Source: Tubulanus polymorphus (lineage: Eukaryota; Animalia; Nemertea). Taken from it: DNA of 23,339 nucleotides. Positions within the stretch are counted from its first letter, which is position 1. The number at the start of each line of letters is the position of its first letter. The notes below the pieces were generated by a model. It saw only the letters and a program-made list of their open reading frames with translations. It searched no databases and was not told the origin of the DNA. Shown here piece by piece: positions 1 through 23,339 of this stretch. Both the position numbers and the translations under genes were made by a program. The stretch covers positions 1 to 23,339 of the forward strand of contig NW_027437491.1 of NCBI RefSeq assembly GCF_964204645.1. The letters are read 5' to 3'.

Positions 1-141
1 GCTACTACTCAATTGCTTTAGGCCTATAAAGTAATTCGATAAGCCTACAAGTCGTGTGGAAGATTCCAATCAATCCGCAGTTGAACCACATGGAGAGTCT
101 TATGACAGATAGGCCTATGAGTCAGCTTGCCGCAACCGATG
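1..141 (+). pseudogene. Degenerate copy (copy 0) of the tandemly repeated 114-nt exon, splice acceptor lost
   Basis: 51-141 aligns to the 3' two-thirds of exon copies 3424-3537 etc. and keeps the ATG|GTAAAT donor. The 5' part and acceptor are replaced, and the frame is broken by small indels including TAggccTA at 110-117. Confidence 0.6.
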
Positions 142-579
142 GTAAATCAGTTTAGTTATTCCATATCTTTTTAGCCCACTTGGAACTGGTCTAGTACCTA
201 GCCGTTGGTTGTAGGGAACCGGTATTCGGTAACAACGACTGGTATTCAGACTAACTTGGAACTTAAGACCTTAAGTTGATTTTATTGGGAAATATAAGAC
301 CAAGATCTAGTAACGTGTCGTATACGGCTGAGTGTTTATGTGGTAGGTAGTTTAACTTGTACAGTCGGGTATTGGATGGTGCTGCCATCTTGGGTCCGGA
401 TGGTAGTCCGCAGGCAGAGGGGAGTCGTCTTCCAGAGTTGTTTAGCCAGTCGAAAACTGGTTGTTCGGGGAGACAGTCGTAATAAAACTACTGGCATATT
501 CTATCAGTCTATGCTTTTTATTTTAATCTCTAGTTCTCAGGAGCAGGAGTTGGAGTCTTCCAAGGCGGAGTGTGCTGGC

Positions 580-2510: not shown

Positions 2511-2884
2511 TGTTCGCGTGGGAAAGACGAGTCTAGTGTCCTCAACACGAGGGCCGACAACGACCGATAACGTTTGTGTAGGGAGTTCACTGAATTAAGC
2601 ACTGTTGTCCGTTCTCAACGCGAGGACCGACGTCGACCGACATTGACCGTTTAACTGTTACAGAGAGTGGAAGTAGAAGGGGACATCTTGGCAACAAGTT
2701 CCGGGCAAAAGCAGAACGACCCTGAACAGCAGCCGCCGGTCCCCTAAGAGGGATTGGAGTGTTTCGGCTGCGACATTTAGTTCCGCTATTTAACGTACAT
2801 TGTCGCTGATTGGCTGATTTACGCCGCACATGCGCACGGAGGTGCGCAACTTAGAAAATTCAAGGAAAGTGTAGAGAAAATAGA

Positions 2885-2955
2885 GCGGCTAGAGCAAGAC
2901 TCAAACCCGGGCAAGTAAATTACTAGCGCAGCGTCATCCCACTAGATCACCGAGC
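2885..2955 (-). ncRNA. tRNA-like / Pol III type-2 promoter remnant (SINE-head-like)
   Basis: The minus strand reads GCTCGGTGATCTAGTGGGATGACGC...CCCGGGTTTGAGTCTTGCTCTAGC, with box A-like TGATCTAGTGG and box B-like GGTTTGAGTCT at tRNA-like spacing. The cloverleaf is imperfect. Confidence 0.35.
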
Positions 2956-3100
2956 TCGTGAAAACCAACCGAATGTTTTCAGATGCAAGATGGCCGTTCT
3001 GTTTCCTATTTTGTACCAAAAAAATGTCAATTTTGGCCTCAATTTCAACTAGGCCTACTACTCAATTGCTTATGCATGTTCATATTTTTTATTTTCATAG

Positions 3101-3165
3101 GAAGATGGACCACCGCGTTCGGTACGAGTCGTGCAGAAGATTCCAATCAATCCACAGGTTAACCA
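3101..3165 (+). pseudogene. 3'-truncated copy of the repeated exon
   Basis: TTTTCATAG|GAAGATGGACCACC... matches the first ~60 nt of the exon, then joins directly to upstream-module (HINE-derived) sequence. Confidence 0.55.
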
Positions 3166-3423
3166 CATTTTTGTTCGCTGAAATCAGCACTTTCCTACTC
3201 ATTTTTGAAGTTTTCAAGGGAATTTTGAAGACACTGATCGAATTACCTTGATCTATCAGATCGTGTACTCGAAGGTTCCATCAGCATGAGAGAAATTTTG
3301 GGTCAATCGGATGCAAGATGGCCATCCTGTGACCTTTTTTCGTACCCAAAAAATATCAATTTTTGTCTCAATTTCAACCACTACTCAATTGCTTATGCAT
3401 GTTCATATTTTTAATTTTCGCAG

Positions 3424-3537
3424 GAAAATGGACCACCGAGTTCGATACAATTGGTGTGGAAGATTCCAATCAATCCGCAGTTGAATCACATAGAGAGAGT
3501 CTTATGGTAGATACGAGTCAACTTTCCGAGACCGATG
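3424..3537 (+). CDS. Candidate internal exon copy 1 (114 nt, phase 1-1): (G)KWTTEFDTIGVEDSNQSAVESHRESLMVDTSQLSETD(G)
   Basis: Acceptor TTTTAATTTTCGCAG, donor GTAAAT, length a multiple of 3, open frame. The peptide is Ser/Thr/acidic and linker-like, with no recognisable domain. Confidence 0.55.
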
Positions 3538-4523
3538 GTAAATCAGTTTAGTTATTTCATACCTTTTTAGCCCACTAGGGACTTTAGACCGAAAGTCGAT
3601 TATTTGGGATATTTCTCTAAAACTTTTGAACACATACTGTAGGCCTACCTGAATTTGATCATCATACTACCAGTGAAACTGGTATATTGTGGGTTGACTG
3701 TAAATCAATTTTAACAATATGTTTCCGTGCCTACCATTTGAAATTATAATCAAATCATCAAAAATCAATGGTTCGTAGGCATGGAAACTCAGGACGCATA
3801 TTGTTAGAATTTCAAAAATGGCTTATTTTTAGCCTACTTGGGAGTCCCAGCGGGCTATTGCGTTCACTTTTCGTCCGTCCGTCCGTAGACGGAATCCAGT
3901 TATTTTGGGAAGTTTTGAAGACGCTTCAAGGTAACGTCTTGATATTTGGGTTACACGTGTATCTACCCTAGACACATCTTCAGCCCAAAAACTGACCCTG
4001 TCAGAATCAAGATGGCTGACTGGCAGCCATTGTTGTTCGCCAAAATCAGCACTTTTTACACATTTTTGAACTTTTTGAGGGAAATTTTAAAGACGCTTCG
4101 ATCAATTACCTTGATCTTTCGGATATATGTGAATCCCCCCAGGGCCCATCAACGAAACAAAAATTGGGTCGGTCGGACTCAAGATGGCCGTCCTATGACC
4201 TTTTTAGTGCCCAAAAATGTTAATTTTTGCCCGAATTCTGAGTCCTGTAGCTTCCTACTGGTTTACCATTTCTCAATGCAATTTGTGATGGGTATTCTTT
4301 GGAAAGGGATGTTTTATACCTCAGACAGGTATTTTTCATCAGCCAATTATGACACAATTGGCGGCCATCTTGGTGTCACCAGTACTCATTCGTAAGTGGG
4401 AAAAAGTTTTTCCACATTATATTGATACCTAAGCGTATTTTGCTACCACAATCAATTAGAAAGTTGTAGCTCATAACGTGTTCTATGATTGTGGTGAGTT
4501 TCAAGGTAATTGGATTTCGTATA

Positions 4524-4542
4524 TGGCCACCAGGGGGCGTTG
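4524..4542 (+). promoter_or_regulatory. CTCF-like binding motif (representative; roughly 15 same-orientation copies or variants in the HINE repeats)
   Basis: TGGCCACCAGGGGGCGTTG matches the established CTCF consensus TGGCCACCAGGGGGCGCTA at 17 of 19 positions. Binding is not shown. Confidence 0.5.
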
Positions 4543-4739
4543 AATAATACAATATCTTAGCATTTCTTTATTATATTCGTACCTATGCATATTTTGTAAC
4601 CACAATCAATTGGAAAGTTGTAGCTCATGACATCATCTATGATTGTTGTGAGTTTTAAGGACATTAGTTTTTCTATATGGTCACCAGGTGGCGTTGAATA
4701 GTAGAATAACTTAGTATTTCCTTATTATATTGGTACCAA

Positions 4740-4920
4740 GGGCGTACTCTTTTATGACCTCCGAAGTCTCCGTCCGAAATCTCCGGTTGGCTCCACACAA
4801 AATCCGAATCACACCACCTCGACAGAAAGGAGGTTTCGGAGACTCCAAAAAGTCACGTGACCAATAAAAGAGTACGATTGGAGGCAAACGGATTCTCCGA
4901 TCTGATAAAAGAGTTCGCTC
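4740..4920. mobile_element. 181-bp MITE (PIF/Harbinger/Tourist-like) nested in H1
   Basis: 16-bp TIRs GGGCGTACTCTTTTAT / ATAAAAGAGTTCGCTC with two mismatches. Flanks CAA/CTA versus the empty site GGTAC-CTA-GGCAT in H3 (~10372) imply a 3-bp TSD. Confidence 0.75.
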
Positions 4921-6057
4921 CTAGGCATATTTTGTTACCATGATCAATTGCAAAGTTGTAGTTCATGACATGTTCTATGATTGTGGTGAGTTTCGAGGTC
5001 ATTGGGTTTTGAATATGGTCACCAGGGGGCGTTGAATAGTAGAATGACTTAGTATTTCCATACTAAATTGGTAACGAGGCATATTTTGTTATCACAATCA
5101 ATTACAAAATCGTAGCTGCTGACATGTTCTATGATTTTGGTGAGTTTCAAGGTCGTTGGTTTTTGTAAATGGTCACCAGGGGGCGTTGAATATTGAAATT
5201 GTTAGATTGTTGAGCATTTGAAACCATTTCCCAAATGGGCATGGTGTCCCTGGACCCCTAGTTTCTCATTTCAACATGCGAAAATGAAAACTTTTTGGCA
5301 ATCTTTCAATACAGCGTAAAATGGATATAAAAACAATGGTTTATTAAAACTGCACAGTTTCACTGGTCGTATTAAAACCAATTAGGCGTATGTGTTCAAA
5401 ACATTAATGTATAGGCCTATTAATGTATATTATTCATCACATAGGAATCCCCGAATTGAGGGAAATCTATGATAGAATGTATTGTTATAACACAGGAAAC
5501 CCAGAGTTAGATTGGTCTGATGGTAAAATCTATCATATGGATTATTATGTACTATAAGACAAATGACCCAATAGGTCGGTACAATCTATCATGTGGAATG
5601 TATTAGTTATTACACAGGAAACCAGCTGTTTCATGGACCCAATAGATTGGTTCAATCTATAAAATGTAATGGGCCCTATATCATTCATAGAAATATATTA
5701 ATTTAATTGATTTAACGTATTTATATACATGCATCTACCCTAGATACATCTTCTGCCCAAAAACTGAGCTTGGTCAGAATCAACATGGTTGACTGGTGGC
5801 CTTTTTTGTTCGCTGAAATCAGCACTTTCTTACTCATTTTTGAAGTTTTCAAGGGAATTTTGAAGATTCTGATCAATTACCTTGATCTATCAGATTGTAT
5901 ACCCGAAGGGTGCATCGGCATGAGAGAAATTTTGGGTCAATCGGATGCAAGATGGCCGTCCTGTGACCTTTTATCGTACCCAAAAAATGTCAATTTTGGT
6001 CTCAATTTCAACCACTACTCAATTGCTTATGCATGTTCATATTTTTGATTTTTACAG

Positions 6058-6172
6058 GAAGATGGACCACCGAGTTCGATACAAATTGGTGTGAAAGATG
6101 CCAATCAATCTGCAGTTGAATCACATAGAGAGAGTCTTATGACAGATATGAGTCGACTTTCCACAACCGATG
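6058..6172 (+). pseudogene. Exon copy 2 (115 nt), frameshifted
   Basis: Same splice signals (TTTTTACAG / GTAAAT), but an extra A (GATACAAATTGG versus GATACAATTGG) shifts the frame into a TGA. This could also be a homopolymer sequencing error. Confidence 0.55.
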
Positions 6173-6329
6173 GTAAATCAGTTTAGTTATTTCATACCTT
6201 TTTAGCCACATGAAATGGACTTAAGCGGGTTATCGCATCCGCTTTGTGTCATTGTCCCGAGCTTGACAGAATCCAGTTATTCTGATACATTTTGAAATCA
6301 GCACTTTTAGACATTGTTTGAACCTTTTT

Positions 6330-7496
6330 AGCCCACTTGGGACTTTAGTCCCAGTGGGCTATTGCGTTCACTTTTCGTCCATTGTCCGTCATAGCGTACG
6401 TCCGTCCGTAGACGGAATCCAGTTATTTTGGGAAGTTTTGAAGACGCTTCAATGTAATGTCTTGATATTTGGGTTACACATGTATCTACCCTAGACACAT
6501 CTTCAGCCCCAAAACTGGCCCTGTCAGAATCAAGATGGCCGACTGGCAGCCATTGATGTTCGCCAAAATCAACACTTTTTACACATTTTTTAACTTTTTG
6601 AGGGAACTTTTTGATCTTTCGGATGTATGTGCATCCCCCCAGGGCCCATCAGCATAACAAAAATTGGGTCGATCGAACTCAAGATGGCCATCCTATGACC
6701 TTTTTTAATGCCAAAAAATGTCAATTTTCGCCTGAATTCCGAGTCCTGTAGCTTCCTACTTGTTTGCCATTTCTCATTGCAATTTGTGATGGGTATTCTT
6801 AAGAAAGGGATGTTTTATACCTGAGACAGGTATTTTTGATCAGCCAATTATGACGCAATTGGCGGCCATCTTGGTGTCATCAGTACTCATTCCTAGGTGG
6901 GAAAAAAATTTTCCACATTATATTGATACCTAGGTGTATTTTGTTACCACAATCAATAAGAAAGTTGTAGCTCATAACATGATCTATGATTGTGGTGAGT
7001 TTCAAGGTCATTGGTTTTGTATATGGCCCAGTGTGCATTGAATAATACAATATCTTTCCATATTATATTCGTATCAATGCATATTTTGTAACCACAATCA
7101 ATTGCAAAGTTGTAGCTCATGACATCATCTATGATTGTGGCAAGTTTTAAGGACATTAGTTATTCTATATGGTCACCAAGAAGCATTGAATAGTAGAATA
7201 ACTTAGTATTTCCTTATATTGGTACCTAGGCTTATTTTGTTACCATGATCAATTAGAAAGTTTTAGTTCATGACATGTTCTATGATCTAGTATTTCCATA
7301 TTAAATTGGTAACAAGGCATATTTTGTCATCACAATCCATGAAATCATTCCTCCTGACATTTACCATGATTGTGGTGAGTTTCAAGGCCATTGGTTTTTG
7401 TATATGGTCACCAGGGGGCGTTGAATATTGAAATTGTTAGATTGTTGAGCATACGGAAACATTTCTCAAGTGGGCATGGTGTCCCTGGACCCCTAG
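6330..7496 (+). mobile_element. HINE copy H2, nested in an older HINE-family remnant (~6203-7815)
   Basis: AGCCCACTTGGGACTTTAGTCCCAGTGGGCT head and CTCAAGTGGGCATGGTGTCCCTGGACCCCTAG tail, with internal deletions relative to H1/H3. Both flanks are diverged HINE-like sequence. Confidence 0.85.
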
Positions 7497-8481
7497 TTCA
7501 AGTTTTCATGGGAAATATTGAAAACGCTTCGATCATTTATCTCAATTTCTCTCATTCGCAGTAAATAACTTGGCCTCATGACTTGCTCTAACATGAATTG
7601 CCCTAAGATTGTGGTGAGTTTCTAGGCATTGTTTATGTTCACCGGTGGCGTTAATTAGCCGAAGAATATGGTACTACAGTATATTAGTACCTAGACATAT
7701 GACGTTGTTACCACAAACAATTGCATGTTGTGCCAGTGCATGAAATGCCCTATGGTAATGGTGATTCTTGACATTTCCAGATTGTTCAGTATTTCACCAA
7801 GTACTAACTAGAAGGACCCATTATGTTTGTTAAAGTCTATCATGCTGAATATAAAATATTTATCACATAGGAATCCCCCAGTTTGAGGGAAATCTATGAC
7901 AGAATGTATTATTATAACACAGGAAACCCACAGTTAGATTGGTCTGGTAAAATCTATCATATGGATTATTATGTACTATAAGACAAAGGACGCAATAGGT
8001 CGGTACAATCTATCATGTGGAATGTATTAGTTATTACACAGGAAACCAGCTGTTTGATGGACCCAATAGATAGGTACAATCTATAGAATGTAATAGGCCC
8101 ATTATCATTTATAGAAATATATTAATGTAATTGATTTAATGTATTTATATACATGTATCTACCCTAGATACATCTTCTGCCCAAAAACTGAGCTTGGTCA
8201 GAATCAACATGGTTGACTAGTGGCCATTTTTGTTCGCTGAAGTCAGCACTTTCTTACTCATTTTTGAAGTTTTCAAGGGAATTTTGAAGATTCTGATTAA
8301 TTACCTTGATCTATCAGATTCTATACCCGAAGGGTGCATCGGCATGAGAGAAATTTTGGGTCAATCGGACGCAAGATGGCCGTCCTGTGACCTTTTTTCG
8401 TACCCAAAAAATGTCAATTTTTGTCTCAATTTCAACCACTACTCAATTGCTTATGCATGTTCATATTTTTAATTTTCACAG

Positions 8482-8595
8482 GAAGATGGACCACAGAGTT
8501 CGATACAATTGGTGTGAAAGATTCCAATCAATCCGCAGTTGAATCATATAGAGAGAGTCTTATGACAGATACGAGTCAACTTTCCGCAACTGATG
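8482..8595 (+). CDS. Candidate internal exon copy 3 (114 nt): (G)RWTTEFDTIGVKDSNQSAVESYRESLMTDTSQLSATD(G)
   Basis: TTTTCACAG acceptor, GTAAAT donor, open frame. Confidence 0.55.
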
Positions 8596-8644
8596 GTAAA
8601 TCAGTTTAGTTATTTCATACCTTTTTAGCCCACTAGGGACTTTA

Positions 8645-9025
8645 GACCGAAAGTCGATTATTTGGGATATTTCTCTAAAACTTTTGAACACATTGTAGGC
8701 CTACCTGAATTTAGCTTCATACTACCAGTGAAACTGTTATATTGGGGGTTGACTGTAAATCAATTTTAACAATATGTTTCCGTGCTTACCATTTGAAATT
8801 ATAATCAAATCATCAAAAATCAATGGTTCGTAGGCATGGAAACTCAGGACGCATATTGTTAGAATTTCAAAAATGGCTTATTTTTTCTCATTTCAACATG
8901 CGAAAATGAAAACTTTTTGGCAATCCTTCAATACAGCGTAAAATGGATATAAAAACAATGGTTTATTAAAACTGCACGGTTTCACTGGTCGTATTAAAAC
9001 CAATTAGATGTATGTGTTCAAAACA
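8645..9025. mobile_element. Foldback/MITE-like module (also at ~3588-3830 + 5262-5405, split by H1, and at ~11093-11437)
   Basis: Nested imperfect inverted repeats: TTTTGAACACA..CCAGTGAAACTG versus CGGTTTCACTGG..TGTGTTCAAAA, and inner TTTCCGTGCTTAC versus GTAGGCATGGAAA. True termini are not visible. Confidence 0.5.
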
Positions 9026-9454
9026 TTAATGTATATTAATGTATATTATTCATCACATAGGAATCCCCGAATTGAGGGAAATCTATTATAGAATGTATTG
9101 TTTTAACACAGAAAACCCACAGTTAGATTGGTCTGGTAAAATCTATCATGTGGATTATTATGTACTATAAGACAAAGGACCCAATAGGTCGGTACAATCT
9201 ATCATGTGGAATGTATTAGTTATTACACAGGCAACCAGCTGTTTGATGGACCCAATAGATAGGTACAATCTATAAAATGTAATAGGCCCATTATCATTTA
9301 TAGAAATATATTAATGTAATTGATTTAATGTATTTATATACATGTATCTACCCTAGATACATCTTCTGCCCAAAAACTGAGCTTGGTCAGAATTAACATG
9401 GTTGACTGGTGGCCATTTCTGTTTGCTGAAATCAGCACTTTCTTACTCATTTTT

Positions 9455-10717
9455 AGCCCACTTGGGACTTTAGTCCCAGCGGGCTATTGCGTTCACTTTT
9501 CGTCCGTCGTCTGTCCGTCCGTCTGTAGACGGAATCCAGTTATTTTGGGAAGTTTTGAAGACGCTTCAAGGTAACGTCTTGATATTTGGGATACACATGT
9601 ATCTACCCTAGACACATCTTCAGCCCAAAAACTGGCCCTGTCAGAATCAAGATGGCCGACTGGCAGCCATTGTTGTTCGCCAAAATCAGCACTTTTTACA
9701 CATTTTTGATCTTTTTGAGAGAAATTTTGAAGACGCTTCGATCAATTACCTTGATCTTTCGGATATACGTGAATCCCCCCAGGGCCCATCAACATAACAA
9801 AAATTGGGTCGGTCGGACTCGAGATGGCCGTCCTATGACCTTTTTAGTGCCCAAAAATGTTAATTTTTGCCCGAATTCTGAGTCCTGTAGCTTCCTACTG
9901 GTTTGCCATTTCTCATTGCAATTTGTGATGGGTATTCTTTGGAAAGGGATGTTTTATACCTGAGACAGGTATTTTTCATCAGCCAATTATGACGCAATTG
10001 GCGGCCATCTTGGTCTCACCAGTACTCATTCGTAAATGGGAAAAAGTTTTTCCACATTATATTGATACCTAAGCGTATTTTGGTACCACATTCAATTAGA
10101 AAGTTGTAGCTCATAACATGTTCTATGATTATGGTGTGTTGCAAGGTAATTAGATTTTGTATATGGCCACCAGGGGGCGTTGAATAATACAATATCTTAG
10201 CATTTCTTTATTATATTTGTACCTATGTATATTTTGTAACCACAATCAATTGGAAAGTTGTAGCTCATGACATCATCTATGATTGTTGTGAGTTTTAAGG
10301 ACATTAGTTTTTCTATATGGTCACCAGGGCGCGTTGAATAGTAGAATAACTAAGTATTTCCTTATTATATTGGTACCTAGGCATATTTTGTTACCATGAT
10401 CAATTGCAAAGTTGTAGTTCATGACATGTTCTATGATTGTGGTAAGTTTTGATGTCATTGGGTTTTGAATATGGTCTCCAGGGGGCGTTGAATAGTAGAA
10501 TAACTTAGTATTTCCATATCAAATTGGTAACGAGGCATATTTTGTTATCACAATCAATTACAAAATCGTAGCTGCTGACATGTTCTATGATTGTGGTGAG
10601 TTTCAAGGTCATTGGTTTTTGTATATGGTTGCCAGGGGGCGTTGAATATTGAAATTGTTAGATTGTTGAGCATTTGGAACCACTTCCCAAGTGGGCATGG
10701 TGTCCCTGGACCCCTAG
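9455..10717 (+). mobile_element. HINE copy H3 (most intact), with four 154-bp internal repeats
   Basis: Head AGCCCACTTGGG..., (GTCY)n, tail CCCAAGTGGGC...CCCCTAG. The repeat anchor CAGGG recurs at 10171, 10325, 10479 and 10633. The empty site CTTACTCATTTTTGAAG is seen at ~5829 and ~8253. Confidence 0.9.
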
Positions 10718-10935
10718 TTGAAGTTTTCAAGGGAATTTTGAAGACTCTGATCAATTACCTTGATCTATCAGATTGTATACCCGAAGGGTGCATCGGCATG
10801 AGAGAAATTTTTGGTCAATCGGACGCAAGATGGCCGTCCTGTGACCTTTTTTCGTACCCAAAAAATATCAATTTTGGTCTCAATTTCAACCACTACTCAA
10901 TTGCTTATGCATGTTCATATTTTTAATTTTCACAG

Positions 10936-11049
10936 GAAAATGGACCACCAAGTTCGATACAATTGGTGTGAAAGATTCCAATCAATCCGCAGTTGAATCA
11001 CATAGAGAGAGTCTTATGGTAGATATGAGTCAACTTTCCGCAACTGATG
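10936..11049 (+). CDS. Candidate internal exon copy 4 (114 nt): (G)KWTTKFDTIGVKDSNQSAVESHRESLMVDMSQLSATD(G)
   Basis: TTTTCACAG acceptor, GTAAAT donor, open frame. Confidence 0.55.
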
Positions 11050-11480
11050 GTAAATCAGTTTAGTTATTTCATACCTTTTTAGCCCACTAGGGAACGAAAG
11101 TCAATTTTTTTGGGATATTTCTCTAAAACTTTTGAACACATACCTGAATTTGATCTTCATACTACCAGTGAAACTGTTATATTGGGGGTTGACCGTAAAT
11201 CAATTTTAACAATATGTTTCCGCGCCTACCATTTGAAATTATAATCAAATCATCAAAAATCAATGGTTCGTAGGTATGGAAACTCAGGACGCATATTGTT
11301 AGAATTTCAAAAATGGCTTATTTTTTCTCATTTCAACATGCGAAAATGAAAACTTTTTGGCAATCCTTCAATACAGTGTAAAGTGGATATAAAAACGATG
11401 GTTTATTAATACTGCGCAGTTTGACTGGTCGTATTAAGGGTGCTCCTATCCCTTAATTATCAAAATTTTCCATTTTCGAC

Positions 11481-12132
11481 ATTATATTGATACCTAAACA
11501 TATTGTATTACCACAATCTATTGAAAGTTGTAGCTCATAAGGTGTTCTATGATTTTGGTTAGCTTCAAGGTCATCGGTTTTTGTATATGGTCACCAGGGG
11601 GCGTTAAATAATACAATAACTTAGTATTTCTATATTATGTCTGTACCTATGCATATTTTGTTACCACAATTAATTGCAAAGTTATAGCTCATGACATCGT
11701 CTATGTATGTGGTGAGTTTTAAGGACATGAGTTATTATATATGGTCACCAGGGGCGTTGAATAGTAGAATAACTTAGTATTTCCTTATAGATTGGTATCT
11801 AGGCATATTTTGTTACCATGATCAATTGCAAAGTTGTAGTTCATGACATGTTCTTTGATTGTGGTGAGTTTCGAGGTCATTGGGTTTTGCATATGGTCAC
11901 CAGGGGGCATTGAATAGTAGAATAACTTAGTATTTCCATATTAAATCGGTAACGAGGCATATTTTGTTATCACAATCAATTACAAAATCGTAGCTGTTGA
12001 CTTATTCTAATTGATTGTGGTGAGTTTCAGGGTCATTGGTTTTTGTATCTGGTTACCAGGGGCGCTGAATATTGAAATTGTTAGATTGTTGAGCATTTGA
12101 AACTACCTGGCATGGTGTCACTGGACTGCTAG
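11481..12132 (+). mobile_element. 5'-truncated HINE copy H4
   Basis: Four ~154-bp repeats and a diverged tail GGCATGGTGTCACTGGACTGCTAG; the head is absent. Confidence 0.75.
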
Positions 12133-13728
12133 TTTACTTATTTTTGAAGTTTTCATGGGGAATTTTGAGGACACTCTACTTGATCTATCAGATTGTATTC
12201 CTGAAGGGTGCGTCAGCATGAGAGAGATTTTGGGCAAATCGGATACAAGATGGCCGTCCTGTGACCTTTTTGTACCAAAAAATGTGACGTTATTACCACA
12301 AGAAATTGCAAGTTGTGCCAGTGCATGAAATGCTCTATCGTAATGGTAATTCTTGACATTTGCAGATTGTCAGGTATTTCACCAAGTACTTACTAATCAC
12401 CTTGAGGGACCCAATATGTTTGTTAAAGTCTATATTCATACTGAATATATATTATTTTTCACATGCCCCGTTTGAGGGAAATCTATGATAGAATGTATTT
12501 ATAACACAGTAAACCCAAAGTTAGATTGGTCTGGTCAAATCTATCATATGGATTATTTTGTATTATTAGGGCCCAACAGGTCGGTACAAACTATCATGTG
12601 GAATGTATTAGTTATTACAGAGGAAACCATCTGTTTGATTGACCCAATAGATAGGTACAATCTATAATCTATAATCTATAAAATGTAATAGGCCCTATAT
12701 CATTTATAAAAATATATTAATGCAATTGATATAATTTATTTATATACATGTATCTACCCTAGATACACTTTTTTACAAAATACTAGCTTAGTCAGAATCA
12801 ACATGGTTGACTGGCGGCCATTTTTTGTTTGCTGAAATCAGCATTTTTTACTTATTTTTGAAGTTTTCAAGGGAAATATTGAGGACACTCTGCTTGATCT
12901 ATCAGATTGCATTCCTGAAGGGTGCGTCAGCATGAGAGAGATTTTGGGTCAATCGGATGCAACATGGCCGTCCTGAGTTTTAAGGTCACATGAGCAATTG
13001 TAATTTAAAACATAACCAATACATATTCTTCAGATTATTCTCGGGTCGAAATTCAATATTATGATGTAGTGCAAAGTTGCAGATTATGTCCCTATGAACA
13101 TGTACATCAAGTTTTACAGGGATGCATTATTCATCATGGCCACCAAGCAGTGCTAAATATCAATGGTTGAAATTAACCGTAATAACATTTGAAAGCAGTT
13201 TAGTTTTACTAGTATATCATAAAGAATATATAAAGTTTAAAGGTCATACCTTTTTCGATATGCTGCCAGGCTGAGGCGATGTTTAATATACATACAATAT
13301 AATAGTGCACTTCCCGAGTTTCAATGTCACAATTTTGATATCCCTACCCAGGTAGCTTACTTTCAAAAAGGTTAATTTAAATAGCTCAAGTACCTGAACA
13401 AGTAGTGCCTCCCACTTTGACTGTGCACGTATGTTTTATATAATTTGACGGGTCATGTATTCAAATTGGTCAATTAAGGGAAAAAATGATACCTTGTTTC
13501 TCCGCTCTACCTAGCTTAAAGTTAATTTACCCTGCAGCCTATCTACCCAGTACATTATTTTTCTAATCACTATCAGGCATACAATTATAGACCCTGCAGC
13601 TATAGAAATGAACTGATTACAAATTTTATTGGAATTTACACTATTTCCCGGCAGCTGCAGAGAAACAAAGTATCATTTTTTAACCTAAACCAAATATAGA
13701 AATAAATGAATTTTCTTTCTTTTAATAG

Positions 13729-13953
13729 GCAGAATGAAAACACGAAGGCGCTGGTCATCGGATGAAGATAAAATATTTCATACGATCTTGCATTCGTTCC
13801 AACAGAATGCCTAATCGTGAACTTTTGGACGAAGCCACTAAAATGCTGACAAAGAAAATTATAAAAAAGAGAAAGATTCCAAATAAACTTATAATGATGT
13901 ATAATCCAGGTGTTTGTGTTAAATTCACAGGCTTTACCCAAATATCGATTTGA
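13729..13953 (+). pseudogene. Candidate degenerate 3' exon with a Myb/SANT-like helix (frameshifted)
   Basis: Strong acceptor TTTTCTTTCTTTTAATAG|GC in phase 1, compatible with the upstream exons. It reads (G)RMKTRRRWSSDEDKIF and stops at 13812. The +1 frame continues RSCIRSNRMPNRELLDEATKMLTKK, resembling the rest of a Myb-like domain. Confidence 0.4.
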
Positions 13954-14073
13954 TTTTTCTAGGAACCGTATACACATTAGACTGCGCTAAACTTGGATAA
14001 TTCCTAATTATTGATGTTTAGACAAACATGAGATCAAAATTGAACTGATCCCGATTAGCCAATGATAACAATT

Positions 14074-14185
14074 GAAACCTATTCAATTCTCAACCCCTTC
14101 TGACAAAGTTTGATTTAAACTTTGTCAGATGGGGTTGATATAGGTTTCGATAATACAAGACATAGTGGAATTAGGATTAAGGCCT
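14074..14185. repeat. Palindromic MITE remnant
   Basis: 22-bp arms TCAACCCCTTCTGACAAAGTTT (14090-14111) and AAACTTTGTCAGATGGGGTTGA (14117-14138), one mismatch, 5-nt loop, plus outer GAAACCTAT/ATAGGTTTC. It ends in GGATTAAGGCC-TA. Confidence 0.65.
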
Positions 14186-15763
14186 ACGTGTATGCGCAAG
14201 CACTCTTCGATTTTGAAGGATAAACTACATGTATATTGATGACTATGCTGAGTTGATTTAGTAATTTGGTGAATTCAAAGGAAGGAACAGTGCAGGAACT
14301 TCCTCACATTGCCAAACGTTTCCATGTGGATATGCAGCGGCACTTGAATATGCCATATTACATGAATCCATACATCCCTTCCATTCTCTTGGATTATGCC
14401 AATGCAGTACCGTGAAAACAGAAAATAAAATTATTTCACAGGAAACCACTTAGAATGGTCTATTAAAGTCTCCCATATGGGTATCGGAATGTATAAGTTT
14501 GATATAAGACCATATTTGACCCAATAGATAGTACAATCATGTATCATGTGATATATATTAGTTACTACAGAAAACCAACTGTTTGATGGACCCAACAGAT
14601 AGGTACAAATATCAAAAGAAATATATTAGTTATTACTGAGGGCCCCAATATGTCTGTTTAATATTATCTCATAAACTCAACAGTTTGAAACGGGGGAAAT
14701 CTTATGATATGAAATGAGAGACTACGTAGAAAAAACCAGTGCCTGTGGCTACTAGTCGACAATTTCTAAATTAATTTTCCTGTGCGATTTGGTTTCGTAC
14801 AATTGAGAGACTACTTTTTTCAGTAGGGCATCTTTTGGATCACATCACTGGAAATTGGCTTGTGCTTTTGGGCCCCTTCGTTGGTTATCTACAAATGTTT
14901 CATATAAGCTATCGACCACAATGCTGACACCGAGATGGTCAGAAACTGACCAATTGAGATATGATCCCCGAGTCTGAACGATTCAGACTTCGAATGTCGG
15001 AAAATTCTCAAGCCATGTTTGTTTACAAACTACCAAGTATTCATCATTGCAAATTCATAAGCTGACCAACACTGACCACTACTGACGAATTACAATTTCA
15101 CGAACATGAGAACGATATACCGCGTTTGGTGTGAAACTAGAAAAGATTCGCCATTGAAGATTCATAAATTGACCATTGACCACCAATGACCAATTCAAAA
15201 CGAATAAGATCACAATACAATGATTTACCCCCACTTTCATCCAACAGCACGATACCATTTAATTGAATCATTAAACGCATTGGGCTTCTGATATTTGAAA
15301 TCATTTGTTACAATGAAGTTGATCCTAAGACTTGATCACCTGCGCTACAGAAAACGTACAAGACGAAATTTTAAGATTGTAAAATCCGATTAGGTGATCG
15401 TCATTATGACGACAGCTCCATCTCTGTAATTCTTAAGAGATTAGAACCACTTCTGGGTCGTCAATACAATTAAACTTTGACTCGAAATAATGTTTAATTT
15501 ACTAATTTGAATAAGCAGTTCAAACTTGGGACTCATAAGGTGATGACCCAATAGACCTGTACATAATGTTTCCGCAGTTTGAGGCACCCAATAAGTCTGT
15601 TAAATCTATGGAATATATAATTTTTAGTATGAACCCATATAGGTCCCAATAGGTAAGTAAAGTCTACCATATGAATATATATAAAATTATGTACCGTACA
15701 GTAATATCAGGATACACAGCCGACATCGGGGATTCGTGATTAAATATTCACATCTTAGATGAA

Positions 15764-15875
15764 TTCTAGAGGCCATAAGAGCTAATTTTGACCACTTTGA
15801 CCAATTTTCTAGAGGCCATAAGAGCTAATTTTGACCACTTTGACCAATTTTCTAGAGGCCATAAGAGCTAATTTT
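15764..15875. repeat. 43-bp tandem repeat, ~2.6 copies
   Basis: TTCTAGAGGCCATAAGAGCTAATTTT... recurs at 15764, 15807 and 15850. Confidence 0.9.
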
Positions 15876-16911
15876 TTTAAAAATACATTTTCTTTTCTTC
15901 CAAATTTCCTAGATCCGCCTGGTAATGAAAATGGCATCTTAGGTACCGGGTATACGATTGATACTATTGAGTCAAAACTTCATCAAAATCGAAAACAAAT
16001 GGTTCAATTGGATCGAAGATTTAGATTTGTTTAAATCCGTTTACTGGGCAACTTTCATGAAAAAAACCTGCCTGGTTCAGTGCGGCCGCCTACCGTAAAC
16101 ACTTGTTTTTCTGGTCATTCCACCTGATGATGGCTGTGGTTTCATAGTAATAAATTTGATCGTATAATCTTAAATTTGAAGTGTAGGATTTCTTCATTTA
16201 TCTACAGTATACACGGATTATAGTGTTTATTCGACATCTATTAAGCAATCCTTTAGCTAAGACTATCTCAGTGGTTATTATTGTGGCATTTCACTGTCAA
16301 AGGGCTATGCTTACAACAACTTAAATTGGACAGCTCATATATGACCAAACTCAAACTTGTTCTTTTGTTACATGTGGCCCGTACACAGAAAATCCCAACT
16401 GCTTTAAATATCACCGTATTTGTGCCTCAGAACAAAATGCTGCTGTTTGCAATTCGGACTAATTTGATACTCCCCCCCCCCCTTAAATGCAGAATAACAT
16501 TTATTATGGCGTCTTGGGTTATTCAATTATTGGTGCGGCATGTCGCTTTACGGTCGTAGGTGGCACGTCCCTGATCGAGTAGCTAGGCGTTCGCGTTCGG
16601 TATTTTTGAAAAGCGTCGGCTGTTTGCGAGGCCGGTGGTGTATCGGAGGGTGCGAGGCTGGTTGTGTATCGGGGGTGTATGGAGATGACTATTACAAAGG
16701 AAACGAACCGTTCTGTTGGTCTCGAAATCATATACCGGGTACCCGATATACCGGTATGCTATTTAAGTTTTATACAAGACCCAATAAGGACTGTCGTGCC
16801 CCGAATTCTCTGCTGGTGCTTGAGTCCCAGGTCTCAAATGGTCGTTCTATCTATCATGTGGAATGGCATGCAATGGGCTATAACACATTGAAAACCCAAT
16901 ATTCGAGGGAC

Positions 16912-16933
16912 TGTGTGTGTATGTGTGTGTGTG
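16912..16933. repeat. Imperfect (TG)n microsatellite
   Basis: TGTGTGTGTATGTGTGTGTGTG. Confidence 0.85.
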
Positions 16934-17185
16934 TAATGGTCCTATGGATCAGTTTCGTATAAAAACATGACCCACTAATACTGTATCAGATTAGTGTGGA
17001 GTATATATTTGTTACGAAAGCGTCGACTTATTTCGCAATATCCGAGTCTAAATTCATTTATTTGTCTATCCATTAATAAATCAGCCATACCTTTTTCATC
17101 AAAATGAACAATACATGAAACAGCATATTTGTATAACAAAATCGTCAACCGGTCGCATAACGAAGGCCTGCCCTTATGAAAATGG

Positions 17186-17370
17186 TACACGTGTATTTAG
17201 CTAAATACACGTGTAATATGAAATTACACGTGTACTTTTGACGTGTATTTTGAAATACACGTGTAACTTATGACGTGTATTTTAAAAACACGTGTAAATT
17301 CATATGTGGCTTCTGAAATACACGTGCAATCTGGATGCATGTACTAGGCTAAAAAATTATACATGTACCT
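17186..17370. repeat. Left subterminal array of the TACACGTGTA palindrome
   Basis: About 8-9 exact or degenerate copies at ~15-30-bp spacing. Confidence 0.9.
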
Positions 17371-17702
17371 TGTTTCTCATAATTGGTCACTTTTGTAATC
17401 TGCAATAAAATTTGTAATTACATCATTTAGCATCACATGATTTTATTAAAAGTAAGATTGTGCATGTAATGTTTGAGAAATTGAAGGAATCTCCTGTCTT
17501 TTTAATTATTTGATCCTCATTTAGTAGTTTTTTCCAGGATGCCGTGTCAAAAAAGTCATGTTGTTTGTCCTGTATTGACTAGATTGGATCCTGTATGAAT
17601 GAAGCACATGTCTTTGTTGCCCCTTGAATAAATCCAAAAACTGTTTCACAAAAATCATGATCTGAACAAAAAATTTTGGATATTTTTCATTTATTATCAA
17701 GA

Positions 17703-17735
17703 TAACTAGAGGCTTAGGGGACTGCCCAAGCCCCG
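17703..17735 (-). mobile_element. 3' end (hairpin + CTAG-TT) of a different Helitron/Helentron-type element
   Basis: The minus strand reads CGGGGCTTGGGCAGTCCCCTAAGCCTCTAGTT, the same tail architecture as the HINEs. It sits where transposase similarity ends. Confidence 0.4.
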
Positions 17736-17749
17736 AATTACAATGTTAT

Positions 17750-18442
17750 TTATGAAAAATGTTGAATATATTGCTGTCACCAGCTCGAAGTGTTCTGCTT
17801 TCCTTGTAGGCCCATTCATTAATTTTGCTAGCTAGCTCTTCTTAGCCGAGGAGTCTTTTCAGTTGTTCATTAACGGGCATGTACACAAAAAAATGTCCTT
17901 TTTCCTCTAATGTTGCCTTATCATACTGTATAACACATAATGAACATTTGTATCATACCTGCAGTTTTTTGAATAATGTCTTATATACGGGGCAGTAATA
18001 TTTGTTCACCTCCGGACATAGAGAAAATCTTTTGAAAATAGGGTAATTAGAACTGCGTAGAACCGCTTCTCAGTAACAGTAAATTCAACTGATCCAACAA
18101 TCCAGTCAAAACAGTTGATGTGGATCCAGCTTTGAGGGAGAACGCCATAATAGTAGTAACAGCCCCACGATGGTTCACCTCAGCATTTGTGTGGAGAGGA
18201 TCATCTATTTCCATCAATGAGCTGTGGCTGCAAAACAGATTAAACATTTTTGTGATTGGTCAAGTTCATATCGGATGAGTAGATTGGCAATTAAGATTGC
18301 ATTTTTAGTCATAAGGCACTGTATTACTAACTTACGTTGTCATAACCATTGTCTGCATTATTGGTGGATTGTGGCCATTTTCAATTCTTAAATCTTCCAG
18401 ATTCTCAAAATCCACTTCTTGAAAAATCGAAATGTCCATCAT
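17750..18442 (-). pseudogene. N-terminal part of an EnSpm/CMC-type transposase, spliced, with a frameshift and stops
   Basis: Exon 18442-18336 (MMDISIFQEV..., donor GTAAGT) joins in frame to the exon from 18227 (acceptor TTTTGCAG): DDPLHTNAEVNHRGAVTTIMAFSLKAGSTSTVLTGLLDQLNLLL. After a shift it reads SNYPIFKRF..KYYCPVY..*YKCSLC..YD..KGHFFVYMPVNEQLKRLL..DSNIFNIF. This follows the helix, CxxC..CxxC, F-Y-P-QL and DIYDG layout I recall from animal EnSpm transposases. No catalytic core is seen. Confidence 0.7.
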
Positions 18443-19760
18443 TTAGCAACATATTACCATCTACAAAACAAAAAGTAATTTGAGATTAAATTATTCCCAA
18501 ATAGAACCCATATAGAACTTAAGGCTACAGTAGGCCTATACGACGTAGGTTGATTTCCAGCTAGCGATTTTGTAGCCTATTGTTGCGATGAACAGTAAAC
18601 CTCATGCATAACATACCAGATCGGACCTGGATTAAAAGATTAACTAACAACATTAACATTAAACTAAACAATTGACCTATGCAATTGCATAATTCTCCAT
18701 GTCTCTTGTTTGTCCTGTCAACTTTATTGAACTGTCAAACCAATAATATACATGTTTATTGATATTGATAAGGACCAATAAAGTCAATTTGATTTGCTTA
18801 CATTTAAAATGATCTTACCTTCAAATGTTTAACATGTAGGCCTACTCGCGTATTTTCACTGGCCTTTTTACTTGCAATTTTCTTTTTCAAACTCCATGCT
18901 TGCAAAAGACGAATTCGGTTGGTGTATATCGATATTTACGGGTAATTTTCCACTAAAAAGCGCATCTTTGTGTTACTTGTCTTCCATTTTGGAACACTAC
19001 CAAAATGAAAACCTCACTGACGAACTGACGAGCTCTAGATAAATGGTTTTCATGAACAGAAAAACAACCTAGACAAAATAATCTCATCTAAATGTTGAAT
19101 TAAATAGTTAGAGGCCTTATTCATGCACCTTTTTGTCTATTTTTATAATACAGCGTATATTAAAATGATCGTCATTTCTTCACTGAATCGTTATTTTCAA
19201 TTTACTTAATTGATTTTGCCTTAGCTTCATATTAACCCTTAGTATAAGTAATTTTTGCTAATTAAATATCACTTAACACGATTATTTTTTAATTCTAATT
19301 GAACTAAAATGCAGACATAAAACTTATTAATAATTAAATAATTTATTTCAATTAAACTCCCAAGCACCCCTGCGCGGTGGCAGCCATATTGCCATTGTTA
19401 AGCAACACGTTTTCACAGGTTTTCACCATCTATTCTATTCTCATAATGATTGCAAAACGCAATAATGGATGACAATCAGTCCATAAAAGGGGATCATTGA
19501 CAACTGGGCCGAAAGTGACACTGTTTCTTTGTTTGAGGTCAAACACATAGTGGATCCTTGAATGGATCATTGAATTAGATTCATTAGAATGGATTGGAAG
19601 AATGGAAGTGGAAGAACAAAAAAGTCGAAGGCCATTTATTATTATCCCGCGTATAAAGGACGCGTTGTGGATTGTTCAGGTATGATTATTGTTATGTAGT
19701 AAAGTAAAGGTTTATAGGTCACTAAAAGAATATGTTTATTTGAATGAAAAGCAACATGAC

Positions 19761-20308
19761 CTAATGTCTATTTATTAATTGATGAGACCTGTTTTTCTGG
19801 GATATTTTGCTTACTTTTTGGGGTACATACCTCATTTATGTCTTAACAGAATGCCAAAAATCGCGGACAACAACTGAATATCCGATATATTTCCAGTTCT
19901 GTACCAATTAGATGGATTGGCAAAAAGACTCCTTAAGTCCAGTTGAATGAGAGAGAAAATCCTCCATTTTGTCAAGTTTCTTGGATTTGAACATTGTTAC
20001 CATGCCTACGCCACCCTGATTTAGTTGTTGAGACTCCACAAGAAAAATAACTTCATTTCGTAAGCATGGTGACAATGTAAAAATTCAAGAAATTTCACAA
20101 AATGGAGGATTTTCTCTCTCATTCAATTGGACTTAAGGAGTCTTTTTGCCAATCCATCTAATTGGTACTGAACTGGAAATATATCGGATATTCAGTTGTT
20201 GTCCGCGATTTTTGGCATTCTGTTAAGACATAAATGAGGTATGTACCCCAAAAATTAAGCAAAATATCCAAGAAAAACAGGTCTCATCCATTAATAAATA
20301 GACATTAG
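19761..20308. mobile_element. 548-bp foldback MITE with 250-bp inverted arms
   Basis: Arms 19761-20010 and 20059-20308 are near-perfect reverse complements around a 48-nt spacer. The TSD is unclear. Confidence 0.9.
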
Positions 20309-21106
20309 TATTGAATTTGAATTAGTTAGCATAGTATTAGTAGGCCTTAAATGATTGAATGTCCAGTGAAAAAATTGTAAATGATCATTCCAATTGTGAG
20401 GGATAAAAACGGAGTGTCTTTGGTGTTTATGCATCCAATCTAAAAACTGCAGGGTCATTTAGATTTTGTTGTGCGCCCATCATCGCCATTAAACTTGTAT
20501 GCTGGACATGAAATTAGGTCGCTGTCGGAGTTTCGACTGGGGGCAAAAACCACGTTAGTGCAATCAATTCTTGACCATTTTTTTTCAAACTTTATAGGGT
20601 ATACACCAATAAGAATTGATCCAAGGACAGACACTATAAAATTGGAATTCCCGTTTTTTTGGCTTAAAAATGTGTCCACTGGGGGATTGTTGGAAAACGA
20701 TGTTAGCGCGAGAGAGCCTTCAATTCTCCACTGATTTCTCAACAACGACAGCGTGATGAAAATCAGGTATTTACATTATATATTATATGAGCGTCGGAAT
20801 GGTTTTAGTAAAGATTATAGCGTAAGCATTGTAAATTCTTCTCATTTTAGGATGCCTACTCACTATTGGATGATACAACAGCTGCTGCCATACGCTGATT
20901 AGTCGGAAAACCTAATACTGTTGGGTGCATGCATGCTGTTGTCCACTCATTTAAAAGAAGAACTAATTGTCAAGGCATTGGACTGGATGTGACGCAATGA
21001 AAGTCTTCCATGAGGAAAAAAGTTGGACCCAAACCGGGTCAGCTAAATAATACGTAAGTACATGAATTCAATATATAATGGCTAGCATTCATTTGTTGTT
21101 GTTTTA

Positions 21107-21275
21107 CAGGGGCGGATCCAAGCTGGAAGAACGAGGGTTCAGCTCTTATGAAAAGGGCACTAGTCAATACAAGTCTCCCTGTGTGAAACGGTTGTATGGG
21201 GTTTGTGCACTTTGATCATTGGGTGGAATTTTTCACCTGTGATTCAAAAGGGCACTTGGTCAGAAAAGGGGAGGG
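21107..21275 (+). mobile_element. Fragment of a CAGGGGCGGATCCA-headed (hAT-like) MITE
   Basis: It starts CAGGGGCGGATCCA and contains AAAAGGGCACT twice. No matching right TIR is visible. Confidence 0.35.
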
Positions 21276-21464
21276 TTTAACGTTTAATATGGCGCTCAAT
21301 GCGAACAATCACTGTGGCCTGATGCGTTGGGTGATTCAGTCGCAGGACGTGTTGGATTCGGGCGATTCAGTCGGCGCAGACCCTGACAAACTAGGTGATT
21401 TTACCGACGATTTCGTTGCACAACTTAAGTGCTCGACGAAATTGCCTAATGTGTCCCCAGCTTT

Positions 21465-22238
21465 AGCCCATTTGAGACGTAAGTCCAAGCAAGCGGGCTA
21501 TTGCATTCACCCTTTGTTCGTCTGTAGATGGAATCCAGTATTTTGGGAAGTTTTAATACTCTTGATATTTAAGTTACACACATATCTATCCTAGACATGT
21601 CTTCAGCCCAAAACTGGTCCGAATCAAGATGGCCAACTGCATTGGCCATTTTCGTTCCCCAAAATCATCACTTATGCAATTTTTTGAAGTTTTCAATGGA
21701 GATTTTGAAGATGAAGATGGCCATCTTGACACAAGATGGCCATCATGTGACCTTTTTTGTACCCAAAAAGGTCATTTTTGCCTTTGAAATTTGTGATGGG
21801 TATACATTTCTTAACAATCTAAAACATACGAGACAGATTTTTTGGATCAGTCAAGCATGACACATTTGGCAGCCATCTTGGTGTCATCAGTTCTCATTCG
21901 TAGATAGAAGAAGGTTTTTGAAGGAAAATATCGACGGGTTTTGACTTATAGTCTTGATATTTGATAATTGTTACCACTGTTGTAGTATTCACCTCATGTG
22001 GAATTGGGGTTACCCAGGTTTTTGTTCTCACCACCAGGGGGAGTTGAGTATTGAATTATATACAATTTGTCTAATTTATTTTGGTACCTATGCATACATT
22101 ATAACATCGATCAATTGTAAAATTGTAGCTTGTGACATGTTCTATGATTGTGGTGAGTTTCAATGTCCTGTTTCTATTTCATTATGTTGATTGTTTAGCA
22201 TTCGTAACCATACGGGAATGGTGTCCCTAGACCCCTTG
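21465..22238 (+). mobile_element. Older, internally deleted HINE copy H5 in an intron of the BEN-like gene
   Basis: Head AGCCCATTTGAGAC..AAGCGGGCTATTGCATTCAC, body homologous to H1-H3, tail ATGGTGTCCCTAGACCCCTTGTT. Confidence 0.8.
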
Positions 22239-22677
22239 TTTTTCATCAGGTGGCGTTGAACATTGAAATTTCCAGATTGTCAAGCAATTCACCATATGGC
22301 TTATAATCAAGTCATTAAGAGTGAAAAAACTTAGCTGTTATATGCAGAAGACTGTTAGAAAAAGCTATATAATTTAATCATCATCCCAAGCAGCTGAAGT
22401 TGATTTATTTATCCTCGTAAAGAAATCATTGTATACTTTTGCTTAATTTTTTTCAAATGGTTATCATTTCAGAACAATGTCGAAAGGAGAAGGGTGCAAA
22501 AGAGGCCAACATAAGACATGCAATTACTCAAAAATTTATAAAATTTATGAAGATGAATAAATCAGTTAGTATGGAAAATGTGAATCTCTTGAGTGTTCAT
22601 TCTAAACAGCACATAGATTAAGGAGATTTCCTCACATGGTGGTTTGATTTGAATTCAACAAAAAATGGCAATCAAAG

Positions 22678-23143
22678 ACACATGTATTTAGCATGAAGTA
22701 CACGTGTAAGACACGTGTAATATTGGATGAAATACACGTGTAATTAGGATAAAGTACACGTGCAACACTGGATGAAATACACGTGTAATTAGGATGAAGT
22801 ACACGTGTGGGATAAAGTACATGTGTAATACAGGATGAAATACACGTGTAATAAGGATGAACTACACGTGTAGTTAGGATGAAGTACACGTTTAATTTGG
22901 ATGAAGTACACGTGTAATACACGTGTAATTAGGATAAAGTACATGTGTAATACAGGATGAAATACACGTGTAATAAGGATGAACTACACGTGTAGTTAGG
23001 ATGAAGTACACGTGTAATTTGGATGAAGTACACGTGTAATACACGTGTAATTAGGATGAAGTACACGTGTAATTGGGATAAAGTACACGTGTAAAATTGG
23101 GCCAATTTTACACGTGTATTTTCATTTACAATTACACGTGTAC
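22678..23143. repeat. Right subterminal array, ~22-bp unit TACACGTGTAATTAGGATGAA(A/G), about 20 or more copies
   Basis: Read directly. It includes a ~122-bp higher-order duplication (22811/22933) and a perfect 17-bp-arm hairpin at 23084-23118. Confidence 0.95.
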
Positions 23144-23339
23144 CATTTTCGTAAGATGAATCTGGCTCGATGATATCGATATTATATTGATATTGATGAT
23201 ATTTCACTTATTTTAAGGGATTTCTGCCACTTTCATCTAATTTAAAGCTATCGCGACTACGGATACATGATCCAATCAACAAATCATATTATTAGAGAGC
23301 ATTACTTCAATATTTGCACTTTTTGCACTTATCCAGATG

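Follow-up and report, generated by a model that had tools for sequence, protein, structure and literature searches.

A non-autonomous DNA transposon family with subterminal palindrome arrays and a probable dead BEN-domain exon in Tubulanus polymorphus

The stretch of DNA analysed here, referred to as the window, comprises 23,339 nucleotides of the nemertean Tubulanus polymorphus (assembly GCF_964204645.1, contig NW_027437491.1, positions 1 to 23,339 of the forward strand). A transposon copy spans positions 17171-23155 of the window and begins with CCC at 17171. This stretch is most probably (with a probability of about 60%) one copy of a recently mobile, non-autonomous family of cut-and-paste DNA transposons that carries a dead exon of a BEN-domain gene. 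Genome-wide searches covered a 268-Mb eukaryotic assembly, in which a 1-kb probe from the left part of the element was found at no fewer than 40 places with identities of 94-100%. Moreover, the 23-nt terminus of the element appeared at 80 genomic ends when up to 3 mismatches were allowed, compared to a single end for the reversed control pattern. Paired ends were found 5.3-5.8 kb apart, with about 40 copies of this size in the genome and a family unit of ~5.4 kb, and longer paired-end copies of 8.7 kb (L040), 9.1 kb and 12.4 kb were also present, together with one of 10.6 kb that harboured a nested CACTA element (L033). The inserts of L040 were examined and were discarded for being unrelated repeats. 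Independent insertions within one subfamily were 98.6-99.3% identical, so the family must have transposed recently, and the two subfamilies compared differed by ~5%. Regarding the coding capacity, no long open reading frame (ORF) was found in the window copy or in the majority sequence of either subfamily, both of which were built for ORF statistics, and the longest stop-poor frames (0-3 stops) were not longer than those of composition-matched shuffles. Furthermore, when the open pieces of copy L036 that reached 33 aa (76 in total) were searched against Pfam, the matches were at chance level only, and an intact gene was absent from every copy examined. Overall, the features of a non-autonomous transposon with terminal inverted repeats (TIRs) were present, namely TIRs with target site duplications (TSDs), many near-identical copies and no intact transposase gene.

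The ends of the element were defined in six independent copies with unrelated flanks (L032, L034, L036, L037, L038 and L040), all of which had the termini 5′-CCCTTAYGAAAATGGTACACGTG...CRTAAGGG-3′ (CCCTTAYG...CRTAAGGG) and were flanked by 2-bp direct repeats (AT, TA, TC, CA, AT and TG). The target duplication is 2 bp long and of any sequence, with no preference shown. In the window copy, the matching TIRs that had been predicted from the sequence were confirmed, with 26-nt arms at 17173-17198 and 23130-23155 showing a complementarity of 92% (Table 1). In addition, the terminus search of the genome recovered sibling families with the termini CCCTTACGAAAATACTACACATG and CCCTTACGAAAATATTACTCGTG, which had the outer 13 nt (CCCTTACGAAAAT) in common and different inner motifs. 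The sibling termini, located at C2:15509845, C4:12112289, C8:2473710, C8:2847303 and C8:4428175, continued after CCCTTACGAAAAT with ACTACACATG or ATTACTCGTG in place of GGTACACGTG.

The palindrome arrays predicted at both ends were likewise found. A total of 31 sites of the 10-bp palindrome TACACGTGTA, taken with up to one mismatch, were detected in the window versus 0.52 expected, a number that was reached in none of 100 shuffles of the window. Six of these sites formed an array inside the left end and 22 formed another inside the right end (Table 1). The left array additionally had half-sites (GACGTGTA) at 17240 and 17272, and the sites of the right array were spaced by 22-23 bp or 11 bp inside a 122-bp higher-order repeat, a spacing of 22 or 11 bp corresponding to approximately one or two helical turns. 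Moreover, the extended site GAARTACACGTGTAAT kept the same plus-strand orientation at both ends, except for the sites within the TIRs. Subterminal arrays of a short motif, which are one of the features of EnSpm/CACTA elements, are present in this element. A further exact TACACGTGTA site at 3952 was part of the high-copy repeat listed in Table 1, in its copy at 3943-4392.

To identify the BEN exon, a six-frame search of the genome with the Pfam BEN model (PF10523, gathering cut-off of 23.2 bits) was used, which gave ten weak matches, five of them above the gathering threshold. The best two were intact 77-aa frames at C9:9948240-9948386 (26.4 bits) and C6:12258216-12258371 (25.9 bits). All 221 nt of the window segment 20840-21060 aligned with these two loci, with identities of 80% (C9:9948247-9948475) and 79% (C6:12258229-12258457), and no other divergent match spanned the whole segment. 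Since it is homologous at the DNA level to intact exons scoring above the BEN threshold, the window segment was read as a BEN exon, in which positions 2-50 of the model fall, by coordinates, at approximately 20929-21054. At both intact loci the BEN match ended at model position 50-52, as would be the case if the domain were interrupted by an intron at that point. The exon of the window presented three stops and one frameshift, and in all the translated family copies (~31) it was broken by 2-3 in-frame stops plus a frame shift. Therefore, the probable BEN exon is dead, and it was already so in the common ancestor of the subfamilies. As a separate observation, locus L039 (C4:16964429-16982526) consisted of tandem partial copies of the element, with BEN-exon matches at 16968686, 16972250 and 16976272, that is, 3.6-4.0 kb apart.

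The original prediction had also placed a spliced transposase remnant on the minus strand (17426-18442), head-to-head with the BEN-like gene. The ORF fragments of this region can be chained via splice-like sites, and subfamily B presented a 175-codon frame with three stops. The exons were searched apart, the best piece being one of 54 aa (L036:667-828:-), and a read-through frame with X at the stops was used for tblastn and shuffled Smith-Waterman comparisons. Pfam searches of 20 ORF pieces of the window and of the best transposase-like piece gave chance-level matches only, and phmmer found 0 matches for the 54-aa piece among 1.84 billion representative proteins. The transposase-like piece had no match in the PDB, and its scores in the ESM Atlas were all below 0.8. 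Similarly, tblastn and Smith-Waterman comparisons with the five Transposase_21 loci of the genome revealed no similarity (z from -1.2 to 2.5), no Transposase_21 match was found in or near any family copy, and when all six frames of the genome were searched at the protein level for an intact paralogue, only family copies came up, none with an open frame longer than 106 aa. One divergent match was found at the DNA level, between the sub-stretch 17489-17695 and C6:12268955-12269157 (79% identity), and the fact that this locus was not recovered at the protein level argues weakly against coding conservation in that frame. Overall, no transposase profile match was obtained, and the proposed remnant found no support in the Pfam, phmmer, PDB, Atlas, Transposase_21, paralogue or stop-poor-frame analyses. 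As no transposase remnant could be demonstrated at 17426-18442, the two-gene head-to-head layout was not borne out, and the idea of a self-contained system of protein and binding sites was not supported, each of the copies examined being non-coding.

Table 1. Features of the transposon copy in the window (positions are those of the whole stretch)
Feature	Position	Strand	Remarks
Left TIR, CCCTTATGAAAATGGTACACGTGTATTT	17171-17198	+	Outermost TACACGTGTA site inside the TIR
Left subterminal array	17186-17328		6 TACACGTGTA sites, 4 of them exact; spacing 19-32 bp
ORF fragments taken for a spliced transposase remnant	17426-18442	-	Homology or coding signal not found
Central spacer, AT-rich	18460-19380		Indel-rich between subfamilies
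Nested hairpin MITE (miniature inverted-repeat transposable element), 542 bp	19764-20305		Arms of ~250 nt at 95%
Probable decayed BEN-domain exon	20851-21054	+	AG before 20851 and GT after 21054 (splice-like borders)
High-copy repeat segment, unrelated	21462-22167		Also at window 3943-4392 and 9586-9963
Right subterminal array	22699-23142		22 TACACGTGTA sites, 14 of them exact
Right TIR	23130-23155	-	Window copy ends ...CGTAAG, without the terminal GG of the independent copies

Several loci of the genome may lead to an autonomous relative of the family. At C6, the segments equivalent to window 17489-17695 and 20840-21060 kept their order and orientation and were separated by 10.5 kb versus 3.1 kb in the window, and the BEN exon was intact. 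At C9, the intact BEN exon was located 1.9 kb from a perfect 23-nt terminus. In addition, the two long copies at C5:13152220-13164651 (12.4 kb) and C6:11756462-11765554 (9.1 kb) had ~7 and ~4 kb of extra DNA, respectively, located in both copies at the position that corresponds to window 18457-19380.

In the mechanism proposed from these data, the family would derive from a longer element encoding a BEN-domain protein and would depend for its mobility on a transposase supplied in trans from another locus, which may recognise the terminal outer 13 nt common to the sibling families and cleave there. A sequence-specific protein acting as a dimer could occupy the phased palindromes along one face of the helix and so pair the two ends, and the BEN protein of the parent element would be, by analogy, the leading candidate for such a binder. 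It may further be suggested, as a tentative and rather doubtful extension, that the family is what is left of a DNA-transposon lineage not described before, characterised by CCC...GGG termini and a 2-bp TSD without target preference, in whose autonomous form a BEN dimer on phased TACACGTGTA sites would assemble the transposition complex. Such a BEN protein would be the counterpart, by analogy, of the TnpA protein of En/Spm or of the Myb-like protein of Harbinger. Some observations, however, weigh against reading the stretch as a member of a family with a dead BEN exon of this origin. The BEN pieces of the window itself gave no direct match in Pfam, the PDB or the ESM Atlas, where the scores again stayed below 0.8, and a Pfam BEN match was equally absent from the BEN-like pieces of four copies, so that the profile match is reached only through the homologous intact exons elsewhere in the genome. 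Of the spliced plus-strand BEN-like remnant that had been proposed, one decayed exon thus stands, by way of its intact homologues at C6 and C9. The segment 20840-21060 was also the sole exon of the supposed BEN gene that was conserved at these two loci; the region of the putative first exon (19380-19760), which was 77-80% conserved between subfamilies, was absent from both. Moreover, the step from BEN to the palindromes is purely one of analogy, and a transposase for the family was found nowhere in the DNA read, beyond which lie any autonomous partner, the two long copies and the loci at C6 and C9.

The absence of other exons at C6 and C9 is what would be expected if the BEN exon were a captured gene fragment (transduplication) with no role in transposition, the arrays being bound instead by the transposase or by host E-box factors of the basic helix-loop-helix (bHLH) type. 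The interior of the element does have other captured or nested repeats, in hAT (Ac) and P elements it is the transposase itself that binds the subterminal repeats, and host factors come into question as rival binders because the core of the palindrome, CACGTG, is the E-box core. Against it stand the second element segment colinear with the BEN exon at C6 and the perfect terminus lying 1.9 kb from the intact exon at C9, and this explanation was considered rather unlikely. The same colinear segments at C6, 10.5 kb apart, could also be taken as the trace of a two-gene Tc1-type transposon with a Tudor-like/BEN accessory gene, of which the family would be a deletion derivative. Tc1/mariner elements make 2-bp duplications, the same length as observed here, and the peptide KIFCSDHDF of the element is reminiscent, by eye, of the FSDE that surrounds the first catalytic D in Tc1 transposases, a motif impression only. 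Against this, the TA duplication that is the rule for Tc1/mariner was found in just one of the six TSDs, and the open pieces gave no Pfam match to a Tc1/mariner transposase (DDE_3, Transposase_1) and no transposase match in the PDB, any partner element lying outside the DNA read. A Tc1-type origin was therefore judged to be unlikely.

The assignment of the original prediction, a two-gene EnSpm/CACTA-like (CMC) transposon with a CMC transposase remnant on the minus strand and BEN acting as TnpA on the subterminal repeats, fared worse and is very improbable. It does draw on real likenesses, as the subterminal arrays together with a second DNA-binding gene resemble En/Spm, and the minus-strand fragments contain a loose C..C...F.Y.P...L..LL pattern that, by eye, is like the N-termini of the CMC ORFs of the genome. 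However, the searches with Pfam, phmmer, the PDB and the Atlas and the comparisons with the Transposase_21 loci described above were all negative, and no similarity to a CMC transposase was found. The 2-bp TSD, observed in all six copies, is outside the classical 3 bp of CACTA and inside the range of 2-4 or 2-5 bp given for CMC/CMCT (PMC4482050, PMC12730594). The termini, in contrast, were CCCTTAYG...CRTAAGGG in six of six independent copies versus the EnSpm/CACTA rule 5′-CACTA...TAGTG-3′ (PMC12730594, PMC4079192), and elements of the CMCT clade, with TSDs of 2-5 bp, mostly have CA..TG termini (PMC12730594). A genuine CACTA element was available in the same genome for comparison. The 4.8-kb insert of L033 (L033:2176-6975), which had been considered as the missing transposase of the family, proved to be a CACTA element inserted into that copy, with one CACTATTGG terminus, a 3-bp ATT duplication and a DUF4218 ORF, and was rejected for that purpose. 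Its transposase presented an acidic-repeat N-terminus and a Cys-rich motif, the catalytic core seemingly missing, and on visual comparison this N-terminus is similar to the ones at L041 and L045, two loci with Transposase_21 matches. Thus, genuine CACTA in this genome differs from the family in its termini, its TSD and its recognisable transposase.

The window copy is 5,985 bp long, versus ~5.4 kb of the family unit, because of the 542-bp MITE nested in it, which was flanked by a TA duplication (19762-19763 and 20306-20307) and absent from every other copy examined. The high-copy repeat at 21462-22167, with 2,895 first-look candidates in the genome, was already nested in the ancestor of the family. 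Furthermore, the two flanks of the window copy recurred around copies at 10 other places (11 in all), at least 1.27 kb of the left flank being 97.7-99.8% identical among the places sharing flanks; therefore, about a quarter of the ‘copies’ arose from duplication of host DNA and not from transposition. On C47, the copies were spaced by 27.25 kb and window positions 1-1745 recurred ~2.7 kb past the right end of the element, which indicates a duplicated unit of roughly 27 kb. The window copy is an immobilised relic that was carried along when this unit was duplicated and so reached at least 11 places.

The ~27-kb unit, made up of window 1-17170 and 23156-23339 around the element, appeared in tandem on C47 and was also present on C13, C4, C5, C6, C9 and C12. 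It included a GC-rich 63-bp satellite at 615-2409 and four arrays of a 145-154-bp repeat (4409-4737, 6910-7286, 10045-10648 and 11491-12071). The right junction of the element (...CGTAAG/ATGAATC, the slash marking the junction) was identical in nine of nine readable loci among the 11 flank-sharing places. The left junction (window 17150-17175; L002-L012, L020-L031 and L039) was found in seven versions, with deletions of 2-13 bp or small changes at the terminus, such as GGTAGGAT/CCC at five places and CTG/CCC in the window. As a guess only, the difference between the two junctions could reflect repeated cuts made at the intact left end alone and then repaired imprecisely. Other coding sequences were found in the surroundings of family copies. 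An 806-aa open frame on the minus strand (L027:1729-4146), with a DNA_pol_B_2 match (E = 6.6e-16) and adjoining zinc-finger ORFs, was located in DNA truncating another family copy on C4 and is probably part of a Polinton/Maverick-like element. Flanking DNA also contained a Harbinger-type DDE_Tnp_4/HTH_Tnp_4 fragment (L032:2752-3180, minus strand) and a 471-aa MULE/ZSWIM-type transposase ORF (L030:1247-2659, plus strand), both unrelated to the element family.

BEN domains are known as parts of chromatin and transcription factors, and in full-text searches of a literature collection, no description of a BEN gene or protein as an accessory of a DNA transposon came up. Should the palindrome arrays be read by a BEN protein, the family would constitute a ready-made pair of protein and binding sites, would add another two-component DNA transposon to those known and might be the origin of domesticated host BEN factors and their palindromic sites. 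The window itself holds a dead, non-autonomous copy only, and its value is as a pointer to C6, C9 and the long-copy loci.

Compared with the known systems, the family fits none of CMCT, Chapaev and ISL2EU as described. Chapaev termini are CAC...GTG (PMC4079192), and ISL2EU has an AT-specific 2-bp TSD within A/AT/T (the slashes delimiting the duplicated dinucleotide) and TIRs starting with GG (PMC4482050). Most autonomous members of the PIF/Harbinger-ISL2EU (PHIS) group encode, besides the transposase, a second ORF for a DNA-binding protein (Myb/SANT, or YqaJ in ISL2EU) (PMC4482050). The family would resemble PHIS in a second DNA-binding ORF and ISL2EU in the length of its TSD (2 bp). However, its TSD can be any dinucleotide (AT in two of six), its termini start with CCC and DDE_Tnp_4 was not found in the element. 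In En/Spm, a second, motif-binding protein helps to pair the ends, and the family, likewise of the cut-and-paste TIR type, has in common with it the arrays in which a short motif is repeated inside each end. The family differs in its termini (CCCTTA...TAAGGG and not CACTA), in its TSD of 2 and not 3 bp, in that neither Transposase_21 nor CMC was detected, and in that BEN is unrelated to TnpA. Lastly, the DNA binding of BEN domains is specific for short sequences, of which some are palindromes with a central CpG. Although the BEN exon of the window, unlike Insensitive and BANP, is a pseudogene fragment known from its sequence alone, the palindrome TACACGTGTA with its central CpG resembles the sites of these BEN binders.

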